DNA from: Selaginella moellendorffii
Lineage: Eukaryota; Plantae; Lycopodiophyta
DNA: 64,000 nt
Direction of reading: 5' to 3'
Assembly: GCF_000143415.4 (NCBI RefSeq)
Contig: NW_003314268.1
Span: forward strand, 1,720,672 to 1,784,671
The notes below the pieces were generated by a model. That model made no database searches. It was given only the letters and a program-made list of their open reading frames with translations, and was not told the origin of the DNA. A program made the position numbers and the translations under genes. Shown in pieces: positions 24,250-33,310 of the stretch; within the stretch, counting starts at the first letter, position 1; each line of letters starts with the position of its first letter.

Positions 24250-26172
24250 TCAGTGCATTTGAAGCACATTTGCTTCATCGAATTCAAGCTCTTCATCTCT
24301 GTTATTCGAGACGGATTTTCCAGTGTCAGTATACGTGTTCGCCAGCAACACGAAAGCCGCAGCGTCCTCCTCGTGTGCTAGAGCGGATTTGGCCGCCATA
24401 GCCCCTCGAGCAGTGTCATTGAAACTTCGACACGCACCGAGAAAGCATCGCCACTCGAGGCCGTCGGGCAGGAAGGGCATGTTGGCGATGAGATCTTTGG
24501 CATGCCGCAGATGCCCAGCTCGTCCCAGCAGATCCACCATGCACCCAAAGTGCTGCTTCGTCAACTCGACGTGGTAGTCCATGCTAATCGACTGGAACAC
24601 AAACTTGCTCGTTTTCACGTTTCCTGCTCGACTGCAAACCAAGAGAACAAGCACCAGGCTCGTGTCGTCGCACACCTCCGTCATTTGCATCGTGTGAAAC
24701 GTCTCCAAAGCCTCGGAGTGATGGCCGGTTTGGGTATTTGCTGCAATCAGTGCGTTCCATGTAGCGGTGTTTCGCTCGGGAAGTCTGGCAAACATATCCC
24801 TTGCAAAGTTTAGATGACCCTTTTGGGCATAAGCAGAAAACATAGCGTTCCACGACACTATGTTCTTCTCAGGCATTTGATCGAATAGCTGCTTGGCTTC
24901 TTCTAAACAACTACATTGCGCATAAGCCGCCACCATTCCAGTCCATAGTATGATCGTGTGCTCTTTCAGGCTTTGGAACAAAATTTTGGCTTCGTCCATA
25001 TACCCGTTTTGGGCATAAGCAAATAATAAGGCACAGGCAGAGATGAGATCCTTCTCAGGCATGCTTTCAAACAAGCACCTAGCCTCCTCGACTTTCCCGC
25101 TTTCGGCGTAGGCGGCAATCACTGCCGTCGATGACACTACGTTGTGCTCCGGCATCATTTCGTAAGTTGAGATGGACTCGCGCAGAAATCCGCTTTGCGA
25201 ATATCCCGCCACCATGGCATTCCACGTTACCAGATTCTTCTCCGGCATTTTGCTAAGAATCTCCTCTGCCTTTTTAAGATTCCCTGCCTGGGCATATGCC
25301 GAGAGCAGAGCATTCCAAGATATCACTTCCCACTCGGGCATCTCGTCGAATACTTCCTGGGCTTGCTCTAGATACCCATCACCGGCATATGCTCCAATCA
25401 TAGACGTCCAGGCAACGAGATTCCTTTGCGGCATCTCTCTAAACATTCTCTTAGCATGGTCCAGATGCTCGTTCTTAGCATATGCCACCAGCATTGACGT
25501 CCACGACACCATGCTCCTCTGCGGCATTTTATCAAACAAGGCCTTAACTTCTTGAAGATTCCCATCCTGAGCATATGCAGAAATAAGCGCGTTCCAGGAA
25601 ACAGGATCTCTCTCAGGCATCTTGTTAAACAGACGTAAGGCATCTTCCAGATGCCCGTTCAAAGCATATGCCGCAACCATACCAGTCCAAGACACAAGAT
25701 TCCGAAGTGGCATGGCTTCAAAGATGCGTTTGGCCTCTTCCACTTGCCCACTTTGGGCATATCCAGTCAGCATTGCGGTCCAGGAAATAAGATTCCTCTC
25801 TGGCATGCGATCAAAGAACTGCTTTGCCAGAGCAAGATTCCCGTTCTGGGCATATGCTGCCATCGTGGCAGTCCACGACACCAGTGTCCGATTTGGCATT
25901 GTGTCAAACAGCAGCTTGGCTTCGTCTAGCTGACTGTTTCGTATGTATACGGATATCATAAGATTCCAGGAATAACAGTCTTTCTTGCCGAGAGCATCGA
26001 AGATCGCTTTGGCTTGCTTTAAACCCCGGCATTTCCCATAGGCTTCGATGAGCTTGTTTGTGAGGAACAAATCGTGAGATCCAACTCGGTTTTCTATCTT
26101 CGCGTGGAAGCTCTCCAGAAAAGGAAGAGTTTTGCAAGATTGAATCACCGCAAGGCAGTCGCGACGATCCAT
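24250..26172 (-). CDS. PLS-class PPR protein (run of 31-aa SS repeats, then P2-L2-S2-E1 and truncated E2), putative organellar editing factor, 640 aa
   Basis: Tandem VSW(N/T)AMxxAYAQNG repeats, HFGCMVDLLGRAG and E-motif WRCFLGAC; no DYW domain. Confidence 0.95.
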   Translation of the reverse strand: MDRRDCLAVIQSCKTLPFLESFHAKIENRVGSHDLFLTNKLIEAYGKCRGLKQAKAIFDALGKKDCYSWNLMISVYIRNSQLDEAKLLFDTMPNRTLVSWTATMAAYAQNGNLALAKQFFDRMPERNLISWTAMLTGYAQSGQVEEAKRIFEAMPLRNLVSWTGMVAAYALNGHLEDALRLFNKMPERDPVSWNALISAYAQDGNLQEVKALFDKMPQRSMVSWTSMLVAYAKNEHLDHAKRMFREMPQRNLVAWTSMIGAYAGDGYLEQAQEVFDEMPEWEVISWNALLSAYAQAGNLKKAEEILSKMPEKNLVTWNAMVAGYSQSGFLRESISTYEMMPEHNVVSSTAVIAAYAESGKVEEARCLFESMPEKDLISACALLFAYAQNGYMDEAKILFQSLKEHTIILWTGMVAAYAQCSCLEEAKQLFDQMPEKNIVSWNAMFSAYAQKGHLNFARDMFARLPERNTATWNALIAANTQTGHHSEALETFHTMQMTEVCDDTSLVLVLLVCSRAGNVKTSKFVFQSISMDYHVELTKQHFGCMVDLLGRAGHLRHAKDLIANMPFLPDGLEWRCFLGACRSFNDTARGAMAAKSALAHEEDAAAFVLLANTYTDTGKSVSNNRDEELEFDEANVLQMH

Positions 26173-26256
26173 CGTAGAAGCCCATCATGTAATCGACCAG
26201 CAAATGCCCAAGAACATCTCCCCGCCCAGACTCTTCGATTTGAATTTGAATTTGAA

Positions 26257-28422
26257 ATGGATGCGCAGGGATATGCCTCCCTGGTCAGTGCGTGCGGTAG
26301 GGCGCGCGACCTCGACACGGGAAGGCTAATCCATGCCGATCTCCTGGCGAGCCCACACTCGAGGAATCGTTTCCTCTGCAATCGCTTGATCGAGATGTAT
26401 GGGAAATGCGGCAGCGTGAAAGATGCGAAGCTCGTCTTTGATGGGATCGCCAATCCAAACATCTTCTCGTGGAATTTGCTGCTGGGAGCCTACGCCCAAA
26501 ACGGGCATGTCGATGAGGCAAAGCTGGTGTTTGACAGGATTTCTCGGCCAGATCTCGTGTCCTGGAACTCCATGCTCACTGCTTACGCACAGTCCGGGAG
26601 AATTCAAGAGGCAAAGTGCCTGTTTGATCGAATGCCTCACAAAGATTCCATCTCCTGGAACGCCATGGCCACGGCATATACCCAGAATGGGAATCTACAA
26701 GAGGGGAAGAGAGTCTTTGACAGCTCTCCAAATCAAACCGTTGTTTCGTGGACGGTTATGATCACAGCGTATGCGCACAATGGGCAAATCGAAGAGGCCA
26801 GGAAATTATTCGATAAGATGCCACAAAAGAATGTGGTGACGTGGAATGTTATGCTTTCGGCATATGCCCAAAACACGGATTTTGCGGAGGCAAAGAATAT
26901 CTTTGACAAGATGCCCAAGCGTGACGTAGTGTCCTGGAACGCAATGTTATCGGCATATTCGCAAAACGGGCTTTTGTCACAGGCAAGGAGCCTTTTTGAT
27001 GCCATGACTATTAAAGATCCGGTTTCATGGAACATTCTTCTCACGGCATATGCCCAGAACGGGCAAATGGACGAAGCGGAGGAATTGTTTAATCGGATGC
27101 CTGAGAAGGACGCTGCCACGTGGAATGCCATGATTGGAGCTTACGCAGCGAACGGTCAGCTTCACGAGGCGAGAGAATTGTTTGATCGGATGACGCAGAG
27201 GAATGTGGTCTCGTGGACGGCTATGATGACGGCGTATGCCGAGAAGGGGGACTTTAAAGAAGCGATGAGCATATTCATGGAGATGCCACAGAGAAACGTG
27301 GTATCTTGGAATGCCTTGGTTTCGGCATATGCCCAGAAAGGATTCCCGGAAGAAGCAAAGAAGCTCTTTGATTTGATGCCTCACCACGATGTCTCGTCCT
27401 GGACTTCCATGGTTGCGGCCTATGCCCAAAATGGACATATCGACCAAGCGAGAGCTCTGTTTGACAAGATGCCAAATCGCAATGCCGTGTCTTGGAATAC
27501 TATGATCGTCGCTTACGCAGAGGATGGCAATCTGGAAGAGGCGAAGAGATTGTTTGAGAAATCTCCCAATCGTGATATTGTTTCTTGGAACTCTATGATC
27601 ACAGCTTACGCATCAAATGGTCGCCTCGAGGAGGCCAAGGCATTGTTTGACGAGATGGAAAGAAGAAACACTGTGTCCTGGAATGCGATGATCGCGGGAT
27701 ACTCCCAGAACCATCGCTGCAAGGATGCTATTCTCTCGTTTCGAACGATGGACATTCAAGGCGTTCAGGTGGACGAAGTTACGTTTGCGGTGGTTCTGGA
27801 GGCTTGTGCAAATCTACACTTGCTCAAGTTTGGAAAGATCGTTCACTCGGAGATCCAGGGCCGGCGATTCAGGCTAGACAAGTCACTGCTCGGGAGTGCT
27901 CTGATCAATCTCTATGGAAAATGCGGGAGCCTGGACAACGCGAGGAAAGTTTACGATGATCTCGGGAGGAAAGACGTGGTGGCCTTGAACTCCATGATCG
28001 CAGCCTATGGACAGAACGGGCATGTCGACGAGGCTCTCGAAATCTTCGATTCCAAGGACTTGGAAGGCATTCGACCCAACGACGTGACGTTCATAGTTGT
28101 CTTGTTCGTGTGTAGCCATGCAGGGCTCTTGAAAGATGGCCAGGAATACTTCTCCTCAATGGTGAATGACTATGGCATCCAACCTTGCCAAGAACACTAT
28201 GGCTGCATGGTTGATCTCCTGGGACGAACGGGAAGGCTGGAAGGAGCCGAAAATCTCATCAAAGAAATGCCGTTTGAAGCCGACGCTGTTACGTGGATGA
28301 CACTGCTGGGCGCCTGTAGAGTTCATGGGGATGTTAAGAGAGCGAAGCGAGCGAGCAAGAAGCTCGATCGCTCGAGAAATTCATCACGGTATTTGCTCTT
28401 GTCTAACACAGTCGCTTCATAG
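26257..28422 (+). CDS. PLS-class PPR protein (SS-repeat run, P1-L1-S1-P2-L2-S2-E1, truncated E2), ~721 aa
   Basis: Tandem SS repeats, HYGCMVDLLGRTG, WMTLLGAC and YLLLSN followed by stop. First ATG at 26257. Confidence 0.95.
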   Translation: MDAQGYASLVSACGRARDLDTGRLIHADLLASPHSRNRFLCNRLIEMYGKCGSVKDAKLVFDGIANPNIFSWNLLLGAYAQNGHVDEAKLVFDRISRPDLVSWNSMLTAYAQSGRIQEAKCLFDRMPHKDSISWNAMATAYTQNGNLQEGKRVFDSSPNQTVVSWTVMITAYAHNGQIEEARKLFDKMPQKNVVTWNVMLSAYAQNTDFAEAKNIFDKMPKRDVVSWNAMLSAYSQNGLLSQARSLFDAMTIKDPVSWNILLTAYAQNGQMDEAEELFNRMPEKDAATWNAMIGAYAANGQLHEARELFDRMTQRNVVSWTAMMTAYAEKGDFKEAMSIFMEMPQRNVVSWNALVSAYAQKGFPEEAKKLFDLMPHHDVSSWTSMVAAYAQNGHIDQARALFDKMPNRNAVSWNTMIVAYAEDGNLEEAKRLFEKSPNRDIVSWNSMITAYASNGRLEEAKALFDEMERRNTVSWNAMIAGYSQNHRCKDAILSFRTMDIQGVQVDEVTFAVVLEACANLHLLKFGKIVHSEIQGRRFRLDKSLLGSALINLYGKCGSLDNARKVYDDLGRKDVVALNSMIAAYGQNGHVDEALEIFDSKDLEGIRPNDVTFIVVLFVCSHAGLLKDGQEYFSSMVNDYGIQPCQEHYGCMVDLLGRTGRLEGAENLIKEMPFEADAVTWMTLLGACRVHGDVKRAKRASKKLDRSRNSSRYLLLSNTVAS

Positions 28423-28674: not shown

Positions 28675-30183
28675 TCACCACCATTGATGAGCAAGGACCC
28701 CAGAGGCCCTGAGAGACTGGAACAAAGCCAGGCATTGAGTGTAAGTGCGATTGTACTTTGCGCTCCGCTCGCCCGGGCAACACTTTTGCCAGCGGTTATA
28801 ATGGCACTCGAGGAAGAGCTCGTCCACCAGGCAAATCGCGCCACTCTCGATAAGCCTGGGCAGCAGCTCAAACTCCGTGCCCTCCACGTCCATCTTCATC
28901 ACCACGTAGTCGCTGGGCGCCACCGTGTCCGCCAGCCAGGCAGCAAAGTCGAAGCCCTGCACCGACGTGGACGTCCGACGCGGCGCCGACGAGGACGCCG
29001 ACTGTATCCTCCCCATGCTGTCGTCGCCCGCCGTACCGAACATCAGCGTCTCGTTCCTCGTCCACGCGGCGTACGGCAGCAGCGTCACGTCCCGGCGCTT
29101 GGCGTAGCCAGCGTGGAATGCCGCGTCAGCCTCGATGGCGTACACCGCGAAGTTCCTGCCGTACGTCGGGTACGCCTTCTTGAACCAGCCGCCAATGCTG
29201 GAGCCGTACGTGCGCGCGCCAACGTCCACGTACACGTGGCGGCTCCGGGCGTGGAAGTCCGACGTGTCGAGCAGGCGTGGCAGGTACTGGATCTTGGCCA
29301 CGTTGCGCTTGAGCACTATCCACGGCTTGGCCGGCTCCTGGACGATCAACGGCTCCGCGAGGCGCATCGTGTGACGCGAGATCTTGGGCGTACAGCTGGA
29401 CGGCTGGATCGGCCTCTTCCTCATCACTAGCTCCGTGTCTAGCCCAAACGCGTCCACCGCCCGGACTTCCACGACCTCGGATCTCTCGAAGAGCGCCACC
29501 AGCGGATCCAGGCTGCGCAGCTGGTTGGCGGAGAAATTGTCGCCGCGGGCGTGGACGATGGCGTGGATCACCGCAATTCCCCCTGGCTTGAGCGTGCGCT
29601 CGATCTCCGACACGAATCGCGATGGCAAGAGAGCGTGATCGAAGACGTTGGAGAATTCGAAGTCGAAAGTGTCGCTGGGGAAGGGATGGCTGTGGATGTC
29701 GCCACGGATCACCAGCGGCGGCGCCGGCACGAGATCGATGCCGGTGGAATCCACCACGCCATTCTCCCTGAGAGCGAGGACCTCCTGCCCTACCCTGGCG
29801 CCGATGCACAGCGCCTTGGATTCCCGGCGGAGGAGATCGCGCTGGATGAGCCGCCGGAAGATTGCCCCAAACGCATCCACCTTGCGCCGCCAGTCCCTGC
29901 TCGTCCAGATCTTGCGCAGCTTGGCGTCGCTCGTCTTGCGCAGCTGGAGCTGGAGGTACTCGTCGTAGGAGGAGAAGCGGTGGCGCAGCGTGAGATCCTC
30001 GCCCGTTGCCGCGAATTCCTCCGCGATCATGAGCTGCTGCCGCGGCTGCCACTTGATCTTGGCCGCCGCCGCCGGCCGCGCCCCCGGATCATAGACGAGC
30101 TTGATGGAGAGGAAGGAGACTAGGGTAAGAATCAAGGCGAGGAAGAGGGGGCGGAGGAGAGAGCCGTGCCTGATCCACCCCAT
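28675..30183 (-). CDS. Membrane-anchored SAM-dependent methyltransferase (type-11 plus FkbM-like domains; At5g01710-like), intronless
   Basis: N-terminal TM, ALCIGARVGQEV, TFDFEFSNVFDH, RTLKPGG, YVDVGARTYGSSIG and VVMKMDVEGTEF. Confidence 0.92.
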   Translation of the reverse strand: MGWIRHGSLLRPLFLALILTLVSFLSIKLVYDPGARPAAAAKIKWQPRQQLMIAEEFAATGEDLTLRHRFSSYDEYLQLQLRKTSDAKLRKIWTSRDWRRKVDAFGAIFRRLIQRDLLRRESKALCIGARVGQEVLALRENGVVDSTGIDLVPAPPLVIRGDIHSHPFPSDTFDFEFSNVFDHALLPSRFVSEIERTLKPGGIAVIHAIVHARGDNFSANQLRSLDPLVALFERSEVVEVRAVDAFGLDTELVMRKRPIQPSSCTPKISRHTMRLAEPLIVQEPAKPWIVLKRNVAKIQYLPRLLDTSDFHARSRHVYVDVGARTYGSSIGGWFKKAYPTYGRNFAVYAIEADAAFHAGYAKRRDVTLLPYAAWTRNETLMFGTAGDDSMGRIQSASSSAPRRTSTSVQGFDFAAWLADTVAPSDYVVMKMDVEGTEFELLPRLIESGAICLVDELFLECHYNRWQKCCPGERSAKYNRTYTQCLALFQSLRASGVLAHQWW

Positions 30184-30252
30184 GGATCGATCGATGGGGG
30201 GAAAAAAATCTTGGAATTGCTGTACAAACCCAGGGGGACGATTTGGAGTGGC

Positions 30253-30408
30253 CTAGCGAGCACAGAAGCGGGCGGCGGTGTGATTCCCACCCACGAGGAT
30301 CAAACAGCGAGGATGAATCAACTGTAGCGGCATGATTGCTGTTCGCCTCTCAACCTCATCCCATTCACGACGACGCCGATTCCGCCACCGCCGCGCCACT
30401 CCTATCAT
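30253..30408 (-). promoter_or_regulatory. 51-aa upstream ORF (probable conserved-peptide uORF) in the methyltransferase 5' leader
   Basis: ATG 30408 to TAG 30253 encodes MIGVARRWRNRRRREWDEVERRTAIMPLQLIHPRCLILVGGNHTAARFCAR and stops 69 nt before the main ATG. The Arabidopsis homologous methyltransferase family is known to carry CPuORFs. Confidence 0.75.
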
Positions 30409-30807
30409 CGCACCAACCGCCCACAAAAAGATAAAAGACCTTTCCCCCCTGCGCTACTGCAAACCCTAGAAAAACAGGAAGCCGCGTTGCCTCCTCTTTC
30501 CCCTGCCATTTAGTTTCCGTTGACTATAACGAGAAGATTAAACACCGAAAATTCCACGGTAAGGAGTAAAAGTGAAAGGTAAAAGCAAAGTTGGTAGAGT
30601 AAAAAAGCACTCCAGATAAAGAATCAACTTTCTCATCAAATACAAAGCGTCATCTGAATGCAGATGGTAGTGTCTACTACAAAGTGAAAAAAAGAGGAAC
30701 ACAAATGGATGATCAGAAGCATAATGCTACCGGAAGAATAATGCGAAGAGAATGGGCCACAAAAAAAAAAATATTTGAAAACTCACAAGCATCGCTCGCG
30801 CAGTGTA

Positions 30808-33310
30808 TCATATTAGGCCCGGATTCCCGAAAGGATTGTTTTGGAACTGTGGATTTGCATTTGGCGGCGCGGGAACACCGAAAGGATTGTGAGGATTGCG
30901 ACTCATCATCTGTTGCTGCTGCTGCTGTTGCTGCTGCAAGAAGAGTGCCTGCTGATGTTGAGCCATGGCTGCCATTTGTACATTCGGCGGAGGGGCAAAC
31001 TTGCCAGAAGCCATGAACGGGTCGTGGTTCATTGTGTCGAATGGATTCATCATCTGCGGTGGTCCGCCGTAGCTCGTCCCCGCCCCTCCTGCGTACTGTT
31101 GCTGCGGTCGTCTGGATAGCGCGTCGTCGTACAGGCTATCAAGCGTCAGCTTGTCAAAACCACCGGCCTGTGAAACGAAGAAGCAAAAGTGTGTGTTAAG
31201 GGATGCACAGAAAAGTTGCAAACAAGGTTACCATACCAGTCTGCTCGAGCTGACAGCATTCTCGTTGCTGCTGGGATTGGTCACTAGAGCCAGCTCCCAA
31301 CCGGTCGTGCCACTCTCTGGTGCCCAGGCTCCATTTGACTCCGAAGTGCCATTTGCCGTTGGACCTGGCCGTATATATTTCGTTCGTTCGTTACGATGAA
31401 CTGAATGCTAATCGCTTACCGGAAGGAACAATGGCTAGTGCCAGCGCATTGCTTTCGTCCAATGCTGAAGGGCTTGGAGCCATCTCTCCCAGGCCCTGTG
31501 ACCATGTCAATAATGAACGAGAGACAAGCCATTAAAGTACAGCTTACCAGAAGATCATTGCTCTCGAACGCGGAGCTTTGAATTGGTTTTGATGGTGGTG
31601 GTGGTGGTGGTGGTGGAGCTTCTGGTGCGGGTTCTTCAACAGGCTCTGGTTCTGTTGGAGCCGCAGCGATCCGATTAGATATGAGACGTTCTCCATTATA
31701 CTCGAGCTTTCAAACCAAAGTAGACTCATCAGCAATGGAAACGCTGCTATTTCAGTTAGCTTACCGCAAGGTCCTTTGGTACTATAGCGAGGCGAGGTGC
31801 ATCTTTAACATACTCTTCCATCGTGGTCAGAAATGATTGAGGAGGCTAGAAACCAAAAAAGAAGATGTATAGTCAACGAAGAGCTCATTGTTGGATACCT
31901 GTTCAAGAGTAGGAAACTGGAAGCTCCTAGCGAGATCCAACCCTTTGCAGATTTCGTAAAATTCTGATAGCCTTTCTGCCTGTAATCACTGTGTAGATGA
32001 TACTTTGACGACAACAATAAACTTGAATTTACCTGCTGCCCTGCTCTTTTGTAGACTTCCAAAGCCTTTATAGCGTCATGCCGTTGCATCTCAAAGAACT
32101 AGAGCAGAGAGAAAAACAATTACGAACTAGAATACTACAAAGCAGATTATTACCAACCTTGTCTACAAGATTAATAATCCCGTCATTTATTGCTCTGTAA
32201 AGCTTGAAGCTCTCTTTGAAAACCTGCGATGATTTAAAGTCATGATCAACAACTACAAATGTTTCAGACTGAATCAAGCATACCAGACCCAAAGCGTACT
32301 GGATCACGTGGTTGCTCGTGGCAGCTCCTTCGGGCTGAATTTTTTTCAAGAATTACGGACTCGTATTTTGTAAGCACGAATGAAAGTAAACCTGGCATCC
32401 CATAAGGCGATGCAGAAGCTGTTGTAGAGAAGGTAACTGTTCTAGTAAGTCGATTGTGTCGAGCTCCCTGGTTCTGCTGTGACCCTGTTCCATCAAAGCT
32501 CACTCATTGTACCGGGGAAAACGAGTGCGAGGACTAACCGATGAGCGCTCTGACTCGACATCGTATTTCAAAATCCGAAAGCACTCGAGCCGCTCCTCGA
32601 GAAATAATGCGTAAGTTCGGACCCAAGCCGAGTAGTCCCATGCTGGTAAGTTCAAAGTATAGTCAGCATCTACAAAGAAGATGAACAGATTGCCTTGCGT
32701 ACCGTTGGGACTAGAATCGTCCTTGAAATTGGACAGGTTGAGGATATGCGCTCGGTTCCGTGAATAATTAATGAGCTCCTCGCGAAACGTTGGATCCCCC
32801 TCTCTGAGTGTCCGGTGGATCACCATGAGCGCCTTGAGGGCCACCTGTGAGCAAAGAGCAACACAAACATAAGTCCCGGATTCGTGTGTTTCTCAACTAC
32901 GAGCTTACTTACGGTCCAAGTGTGCGTCTTGGAGATGCGCCTGGCAAGAGCGTGAATGCAGTAGGCAACGTCTGCCCTGGGCCTGGCGGCCGAGGTGGCA
33001 AGGAAGATCGCTGCGGCGAGTAAGAAAAAAGAAATCGATTGAGATGATCCAATCCAATTCATGCTAAGAAACTAGATGGCTAAATCTCACTTACTTCTGA
33101 CATGCTTCTCTTTGGGAGGGCACTCGACATGATTCGTCGCCTTGACCACTGCAATGTCCAAGTCCTGGGAGGAGAGAAATCGGCATCGATCGATCGGAGA
33201 GACCGCAATAAGAGTACCTTGAATTCGCTGTTAACCTTGGCGAGGCCGACTTTGGTGGAATCCTTGAGCGCGCCGAGAGCTTTGCGAATCGTCTTAGATC
33301 CACCGGCCAT
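30808..33310 (-). CDS. ANTH-domain clathrin assembly protein (PICALM/AP180-like), multi-exon
   Basis: [78 protein letters not shown] and C-terminal NPF motifs with poly-Q. Confidence 0.93.

Follow-up and report, generated by a model that had tools for sequence, protein, structure and literature searches.

What is the 51-codon reading frame that ends 69 nt ahead of a methyltransferase gene in the lycophyte Selaginella moellendorffii, and does it belong to a known family of upstream open reading frames (uORFs) with conserved peptides? The frame lies on the minus strand of the 64-kb stretch of genomic DNA analysed here, which we call the window and to which all positions refer. A first-pass annotation had already proposed its coordinates, strand, peptide, and 69-nt spacer, and all of these were reproduced from the sequence and the list of open reading frames. 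The uORF starts with an ATG at 30408-30406 and stops with a TAG at 30255-30253, with 51 sense codons in between. The elements of the two cistrons are as follows.

30253..30408, minus strand: probable HG17-type conserved-peptide uORF, 51 codons plus TAG (sequence, ORF list, tail-profile match, second haplotype).
30304..30408, minus strand: residues 1-35 of the uORF, an N-terminal part that is variable and rich in arginine (14-sequence alignment; all haplotype and RNA variants fall here).
30331..30333, minus strand: second in-frame ATG of the uORF, Met26, a putative start (ATG list and sequence contexts).
30256..30297, minus strand: conserved core of the uORF, residues 38-51 (LVGGNHTAARFCAR), with the stop directly after; presumed arrest segment (alignment, homologues, haplotypes).
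30184..30252, minus strand: intercistronic spacer of 69 nt, in frame with the main ORF and free of any further stop.
28675..30183, minus strand: main ORF, a 502-aa DUF7870/Methyltransf_11 protein encoded by a single exon (Pfam matches, homologues, tree).

The length of the uORF was dropped as evidence, as 30-55% of shuffled leaders yield an ORF as long: an ATG-to-stop frame of at least 51 codons arose in 604 of 2000 dinucleotide shuffles of the proximal 337 nt (30%) and in 1103 of 2000 shuffles of the whole 624-nt intergenic region (55%). What lies far beyond chance is the C-terminal sequence of the uORF and not the existence of the ORF.

The protein encoded downstream is recorded exactly on Selaginella moellendorffii scaffold GL377572.1, and a copy with 99% identity bears the name LOC9636243. 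Homology search and tree identify the main ORF as an orthologue of the At5g03190/At5g01710 group. Homologues occur throughout the land plants, and in Amborella, the fern, and the gymnosperm the orthologue is likewise preceded by a uORF at the corresponding position. The fern main ORFs (P0006, P0012, P0013, P0015, and P0016) encode 550-552 aa, with an N-terminus about 50 residues longer than that of the 502-aa Selaginella protein; in the fern transcript L007, the N-terminal extension of the main ORF is separate from the uORF, whose stop lies 172 nt upstream. Upstream of the Selaginella gene lies an ANTH/ENTH clathrin-assembly gene (30656-31400, minus strand) whose product is rich in glutamine at its C-terminus. 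Two intron-less PPR-like ORFs of 640 and 782 aa (24250-26172, minus strand, and 26074-28422, plus strand) are arranged head to head with a 5' overlap of about 100 nt. These ANTH and PPR neighbours are unlike those of the moss-clade loci, where the orthologues keep their gene order, with Peptidase_C12 upstream (L003, L005) and Glyco_hydro_28 downstream (L005, L010).

The first-pass annotation had named four Arabidopsis homologues as carriers of conserved-peptide uORFs. This was correct: At1g58120, At3g53400, At5g03190, and At5g01710 constitute homology group 17 (HG17; Hayden & Jorgensen 2007, PMC2075485), and their peptides are given in the ESUCA supplement. HG17 comprises Arabidopsis CPuORF45-48 and rice OsCPuORF38, which are class I conserved-peptide uORFs; it is described by Hayden & Jorgensen (2007, PMC2075485), by Takahashi et al. 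(2020, PMC7106846), and by Causier et al. (2022, PMC9305500). According to the ESUCA supplement, the uORF peptide of AT1G58120 ends in ..LTGGNHTAARFCTR / ..GGNHTAARFCTR, those of AT3G53400 and AT5G03190 in ..LVGGNHTSSRFCTR / ..GGNHTSSRFCTR, and that of AT5G01710 in ..LIGANHTSARFSSR / ..GANHTSARFSSR. Decoded by hand, the reverse primers that have been published for CPuORF46, CPuORF47, CPuORF48, and rice specify the same peptide ends. Cluster look-ups returned no "CPuORF" names, so the link to HG17 rests on the ESUCA supplement and these primers.

The Selaginella uORF has the corresponding tail, ..LILVGGNHTAARFCAR. Upstream of the Amborella orthologue, the uORF at L004:5168-5308 ends in ..LVGANHTSARFCSR and is identical to the Amborella entry of the ESUCA HG17 alignment. 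The gymnosperm transcript L008 contains a 35-aa uORF ending in ..LVLVGGNHTAARFCSR, which differs from the Selaginella tail at 2 of 16 positions, and the fern transcript L007 contains a 5'-truncated ORF ending in ..ALVGGNHTSARFCTR. Absence of peptide conservation from orthologous leaders had been named in advance as evidence against a conserved-peptide uORF; the Amborella, gymnosperm, and fern leaders all share the tail. Alignment of 14 sequences reveals invariant columns at G40, N42, H43, T44, A46, R47, F48, C49, and R51. The conserved segment is therefore C-terminal, as the first-pass annotation had it, but it does not extend back to the "MPL" proposed there: it covers the last 14-16 residues (L/I-L-V-G-G-N-H-T-A-A-R-F-C-A-R), and the "MPL..PRC" part of the uORF is variable and holds two of the three haplotype substitutions. 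The broader reading of the frame as a conserved-peptide uORF ahead of a methyltransferase is supported by the shared HG17 C-terminal motif together with the orthologous main ORF.

A profile of 22 columns was built from 27 tails, none of them from Selaginella, and compared with the 2,335 six-frame ORFs of the window. It matched a single ORF, the 30453-30256 frame that contains the uORF tail, with E = 3.2e-12 (42.8 bits), the next best match having E = 0.57. The same profile matched the uORF of the second Selaginella haplotype with E = 6.6e-12. A mild circularity attaches to these values, in that the library representatives in the profile had been retrieved with a query alignment containing the Selaginella peptide; it is offset by the independently published sequences of the ESUCA supplement, which show the same motif. 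When 1.84 billion representative proteins were searched exhaustively with a profile, 26 matched at E <= 0.001, and in all 23 of these that were retrieved the motif is located exactly at the C-terminus. Word-indexed protein searches, whose index is sparse for such short ORFs, found no match with the single Selaginella peptide and one 38-aa protein only with a two-peptide alignment.

Codon comparisons indicate at which level this tail is conserved. Over the last 15 codons, Selaginella and the gymnosperm differ at 14 nucleotides, 11 of which are third positions, corresponding to 10 synonymous and 2 non-synonymous codon changes. The same stretch shows 6 synonymous and 3 non-synonymous changes relative to the fern, and 7 and 4, respectively, relative to Amborella. 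Because the codon changes separating Selaginella from these other lineages are mostly synonymous, selection must be acting on the amino-acid sequence of the tail. Codon evolution of the uORF had been suggested as a check, and the peptide-level conservation that it brings out, with synonymous exceeding non-synonymous changes in all three comparisons, relates to 15 codons only. An RNA-level element was also considered and is contradicted by the third-position turnover; a scan of the leader against Rfam matched no RNA family.

Variation within the species follows the same division of the peptide. The start codon, reading frame, TAG stop, and final 18 codons of the uORF are all the same in the second haplotype (GL377618, L009), where the 51-nt tail plus stop is without any substitution. 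The uORF differences, D17H, L30S, and P33S, are all non-synonymous and all lie in the variable part, and the same sites vary in the RNA. From 30509 to the main ATG (327 nt) there are 6 substitutions and no indel, as against 17 substitutions and 23 indel columns (a 14-nt and a 9-nt indel) in the 298 nt at 30510-30807. This is the haplotype pattern expected of a class I CPuORF, in numbers too small for a significance test.

Two further elements on the 5' side of the uORF bear on its transcription.

30418..30464, minus strand: 5' contig-end zone, the likely and approximate transcription-start zone (contig ends at 30418 in run X4 and 30464 in run X12).
30405..30509, minus strand: 34-codon ORF with its ATG at 30509, whose TGA overlaps the uAUG (ATGA) (sequence).

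RNA contigs from four runs of four studies each place the uORF and the main ORF on one contig, collinear and without a joint. In all four runs the 69-nt GT..AG intron of the neighbouring ANTH gene (31167-31235) has been spliced out, which shows that the contigs derive from RNA, and this intron is the only joint in the 3-kb stretch. The occurrence of uORF and main ORF on one mRNA, which the first-pass annotation had asked of full-length cDNA, is thus borne out by spliced RNA contigs, which are not 5'-end maps. The uAUG is present in the contigs of 4/4 runs. In X4 and X12 coverage is zero from about 30465 to about 30655, and this suggests a transcription-start zone 10-60 nt upstream of the uAUG, although contigs cannot fix a start. 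In X1 and X7 the contigs extend into the ANTH 3' UTR and connect it directly to the methyltransferase gene, a continuity that may reflect either read-through transcription or a join introduced by the assembly. The start site is the weakest link of our argument: the X4 contig reaches just 10 nt above the uAUG, and some mRNAs may lack the uAUG or be scanned past it. Given transcripts that begin downstream of 30408, initiation at Met26 would yield a 26-aa peptide with the entire conserved tail.

The second haplotype retains the 34-codon ORF, with a single substitution. The X4 and X12 contigs stop short of its ATG, which the read-through contigs from X1 and X7 include; the ORF probably lies upstream of the main start site, and its membership in the system is doubtful. 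It is also worth noting that the uORF TAG is the only stop between the two cistrons, which share a frame, so that its read-through would make an N-terminally extended methyltransferase. This may be chance. In the gymnosperm transcript L008 (285-392) the uORF is likewise in frame with the main ORF across a stop-free spacer of 105 nt; the fern and Amborella arrangements differ.

We propose, with a probability of about 0.8, that the 51-codon ORF (30408-30253) represents HG17 in Selaginella moellendorffii, where it lies in the 5' leader of the methyltransferase mRNA, and that it exerts, by homology, repression of the stalling type. The C-terminal peptide homology, the orthology of the main ORF, the selection on the peptide, and the collinear transcription are established by this analysis. 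Stalling on the Selaginella UAG and low translation of the methyltransferase are expected because the HG17 relatives behave in this way. In these, repression of a reporter requires both the uAUG and the conserved C-terminus, in wheat-germ extract as well as in plants, and has been demonstrated for CPuORF46, CPuORF47, and OsCPuORF38; PARE/degradome peaks at -16 and -46 nt from the stop correspond to a ribosome stalled at termination and one queued behind it (Causier et al. 2022, PMC9305500).

By analogy with the Arabidopsis and rice members, scanning ribosomes would begin translation of the uORF at its AUG. Once made, the terminal ~14 residues of the nascent chain (LVGGNHTAARFCAR) would hinder termination at the UAG, leaving the ribosome stalled on the stop codon, where it would block those behind and lower reinitiation 69 nt downstream, with low methyltransferase synthesis as the predicted outcome. 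Stalling may also expose the mRNA to nonsense-mediated decay. The repression may lift under abiotic stress, as it does for CPuORF47, which is relieved by mannitol or drought (water limitation), and for CPuORF46, which is relieved by heat (Causier et al. 2022, PMC9305500). In Arabidopsis, rice OsCPuORF38 acted as a repressor without responding to mannitol (Causier et al. 2022, PMC9305500), and conditional relief, which varies between members even among the angiosperms, is for this reason not a general property of HG17. The first-pass annotation had suggested that a metabolite or stress might be sensed; within HG17 such sensing is demonstrated for Arabidopsis members only. When over-expressed in Arabidopsis, the At5g03190 main ORF made plants tolerant of drought at the expense of growth (Causier et al. 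2022, PMC9305500).

Four other explanations deserve consideration. The uORF could be a relic, an HG17 descendant no longer translated in Selaginella since transcripts start below the uAUG or ribosomes bypass it. The contig 5' ends at 30418 and 30464 lie near the uAUG, and so short a leader would favour leaky scanning; the length of the ORF, moreover, is within what shuffling produces. Yet the amino acids have been kept through some 400 million years of third-position turnover, and start, frame, and stop are intact in both haplotypes, which implies that translation of the peptide is still under selection. With the uAUG inside the contigs of all four runs and Met26 available as a second in-frame start, we regard the loss of translation as unlikely. 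That the peptide is both conserved and transcribed would equally suit a 51-aa micropeptide acting in trans from a bicistronic mRNA, its position reflecting co-expression rather than cis control. Conservation, however, is limited to the last ~14 residues and the exact position of the stop while the remainder varies, which is the signature of a class I arrest peptide, and the Arabidopsis element represses any downstream ORF in cis, also in cell-free extract (Causier et al. 2022, PMC9305500); a trans-acting product is accordingly quite improbable.

A different origin of the conserved frame was put forward when the group was reclassified as an alternative N-terminal coding exon, "aNT25", on the strength of an EST of At5g03190 in which the uORF is fused to the main ORF (Jorgensen & Dorantes-Acosta 2012, PMC3426882); the frame would then be kept because a splice variant joins the two. 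The Selaginella uORF is in frame with its main ORF, the TAG alone standing between them, as such a fusion would need. The At5g03190 fusion omits the last four uORF residues, which suggests a donor at the R-F junction. This junction reads AGG-TTT in Arabidopsis, as decoded from the primers, but CGC-TTC in Selaginella, which has no GT donor there, CGC-TTT in the fern, and AGA-TTT in the gymnosperm. The four residues outside the fusion and the position of the stop are thus conserved and the donor is not, and the contigs of the four runs, which can miss rare isoforms, have no joint in or near the uORF; for these reasons we reject the coding-exon explanation for Selaginella as very unlikely. The ESUCA fusion ratio for HG17 is also below the threshold used there for spurious uORFs. 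Finally, a chance ORF with a chance resemblance would be in keeping with the abundance of ORFs this long in shuffled leaders and with the empty word-indexed search of the single peptide, but is refuted by the match to the Selaginella-free profile (E = 3.2e-12 against 0.57 for the next best) and by the mostly synonymous codon changes; a motif that sits at the exact C-terminus, ahead of an orthologous gene, in both haplotypes also speaks against it.

Taking the uORF as an HG17 member, its position in a lycophyte lies beyond the published taxonomic range of the group. Outside angiosperms, only groups 3, 8, 13, and 15 were originally found (Hayden & Jorgensen 2007, PMC2075485). In the ESUCA table, the HG17 rows count 4 in gymnosperms, 2-3 in ferns, and 0 in "Embryophyta other than Euphyllophyta"; ferns have been the deepest HG17 lineage, giving an age of "at least 350 million years" (Causier et al. 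2022, PMC9305500). The terms "CPuORF" and "Selaginella" were not found together in the searchable literature. The first-pass annotation had placed peptide control of this methyltransferase in a non-seed vascular plant; ferns already figure in the published group, and it is the lycophyte that is new. The lycophyte member is new to the searchable literature and is an incremental extension of a characterised element. It pushes the minimum age of HG17 back from the last common ancestor of seed plants and ferns to that of all extant vascular plants, and it identifies G, N, H, T, A, R, F, C, and R as the residues fixed over that time.

On the other side of the vascular-plant stem, the tail profile had no match in four bryophyte-clade loci with 1-8 kb of upstream sequence (L002, L003, L005 from Ceratodon, and L011); a further locus, L010, with only 54 nt upstream, was left out of this count. 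The moss leaders have no uORF of their own in common. Because these four orthologous loci lack the tail, an origin in the vascular-plant stem is hinted at, and presence in a lycophyte together with absence from the sampled moss loci bounds the time at which HG17 arose. We tentatively suggest, at somewhat less than even odds, that HG17 is a vascular-plant innovation that followed the split from bryophytes, a brake dating to the tracheophyte ancestor, with the tail G-x-N-H-T-x-A-R-F-C-x-R-stop kept for more than 400 million years and the Selaginella form, marked by its arginine-rich N-terminus and by Met26, possibly a distinct early variant.

The Selaginella uORF can be compared with known systems. 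Like the other HG17 members, it has a tail that fits [LIV]-[VIT]-G-[GA]-N-H-T-x-[AS]-R-F-[CS]-x-R directly before the stop, a variable N-terminus, an AUG start, a DUF7870/Methyltransf_11 gene downstream, and selection at the peptide level, with size and spacer of the same order. It differs from them in residue -2, which is Ala in Selaginella and Ser or Thr in all other members seen; in its length of 51 aa versus a usual 34-45 aa (36-45 aa in the members for which a spacer is also published), with an arginine-rich extension of ~16 residues and a second in-frame Met; and in its spacer of 69 nt, slightly shorter than the published 72-184 nt. It also differs in being a lycophyte member, known here from sequence and RNA contigs. 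Few plant uORF families have been shown to exert control that depends on the peptide and is conditional on stress, and HG17 is among them. The Selaginella member brings no new mechanism to it; its Ala at -2 and its long N-terminus are natural variants that arrest assays could use directly. With the aNT25 class (Jorgensen & Dorantes-Acosta 2012, PMC3426882) it shares the gene family and a uORF in frame with the main ORF, and it differs in having neither a splice joint in the contigs of four runs nor a donor at the equivalent site. The sucrose-control uORF of the S1-group bZIPs (HG1) and the AdoMetDC uORF resemble it as cis-acting nascent peptides with a conserved C-terminus beside the stop codon; their peptides and downstream genes are unrelated to those of HG17, and they respond to defined effectors, sucrose and polyamines, whereas none is known for HG17.
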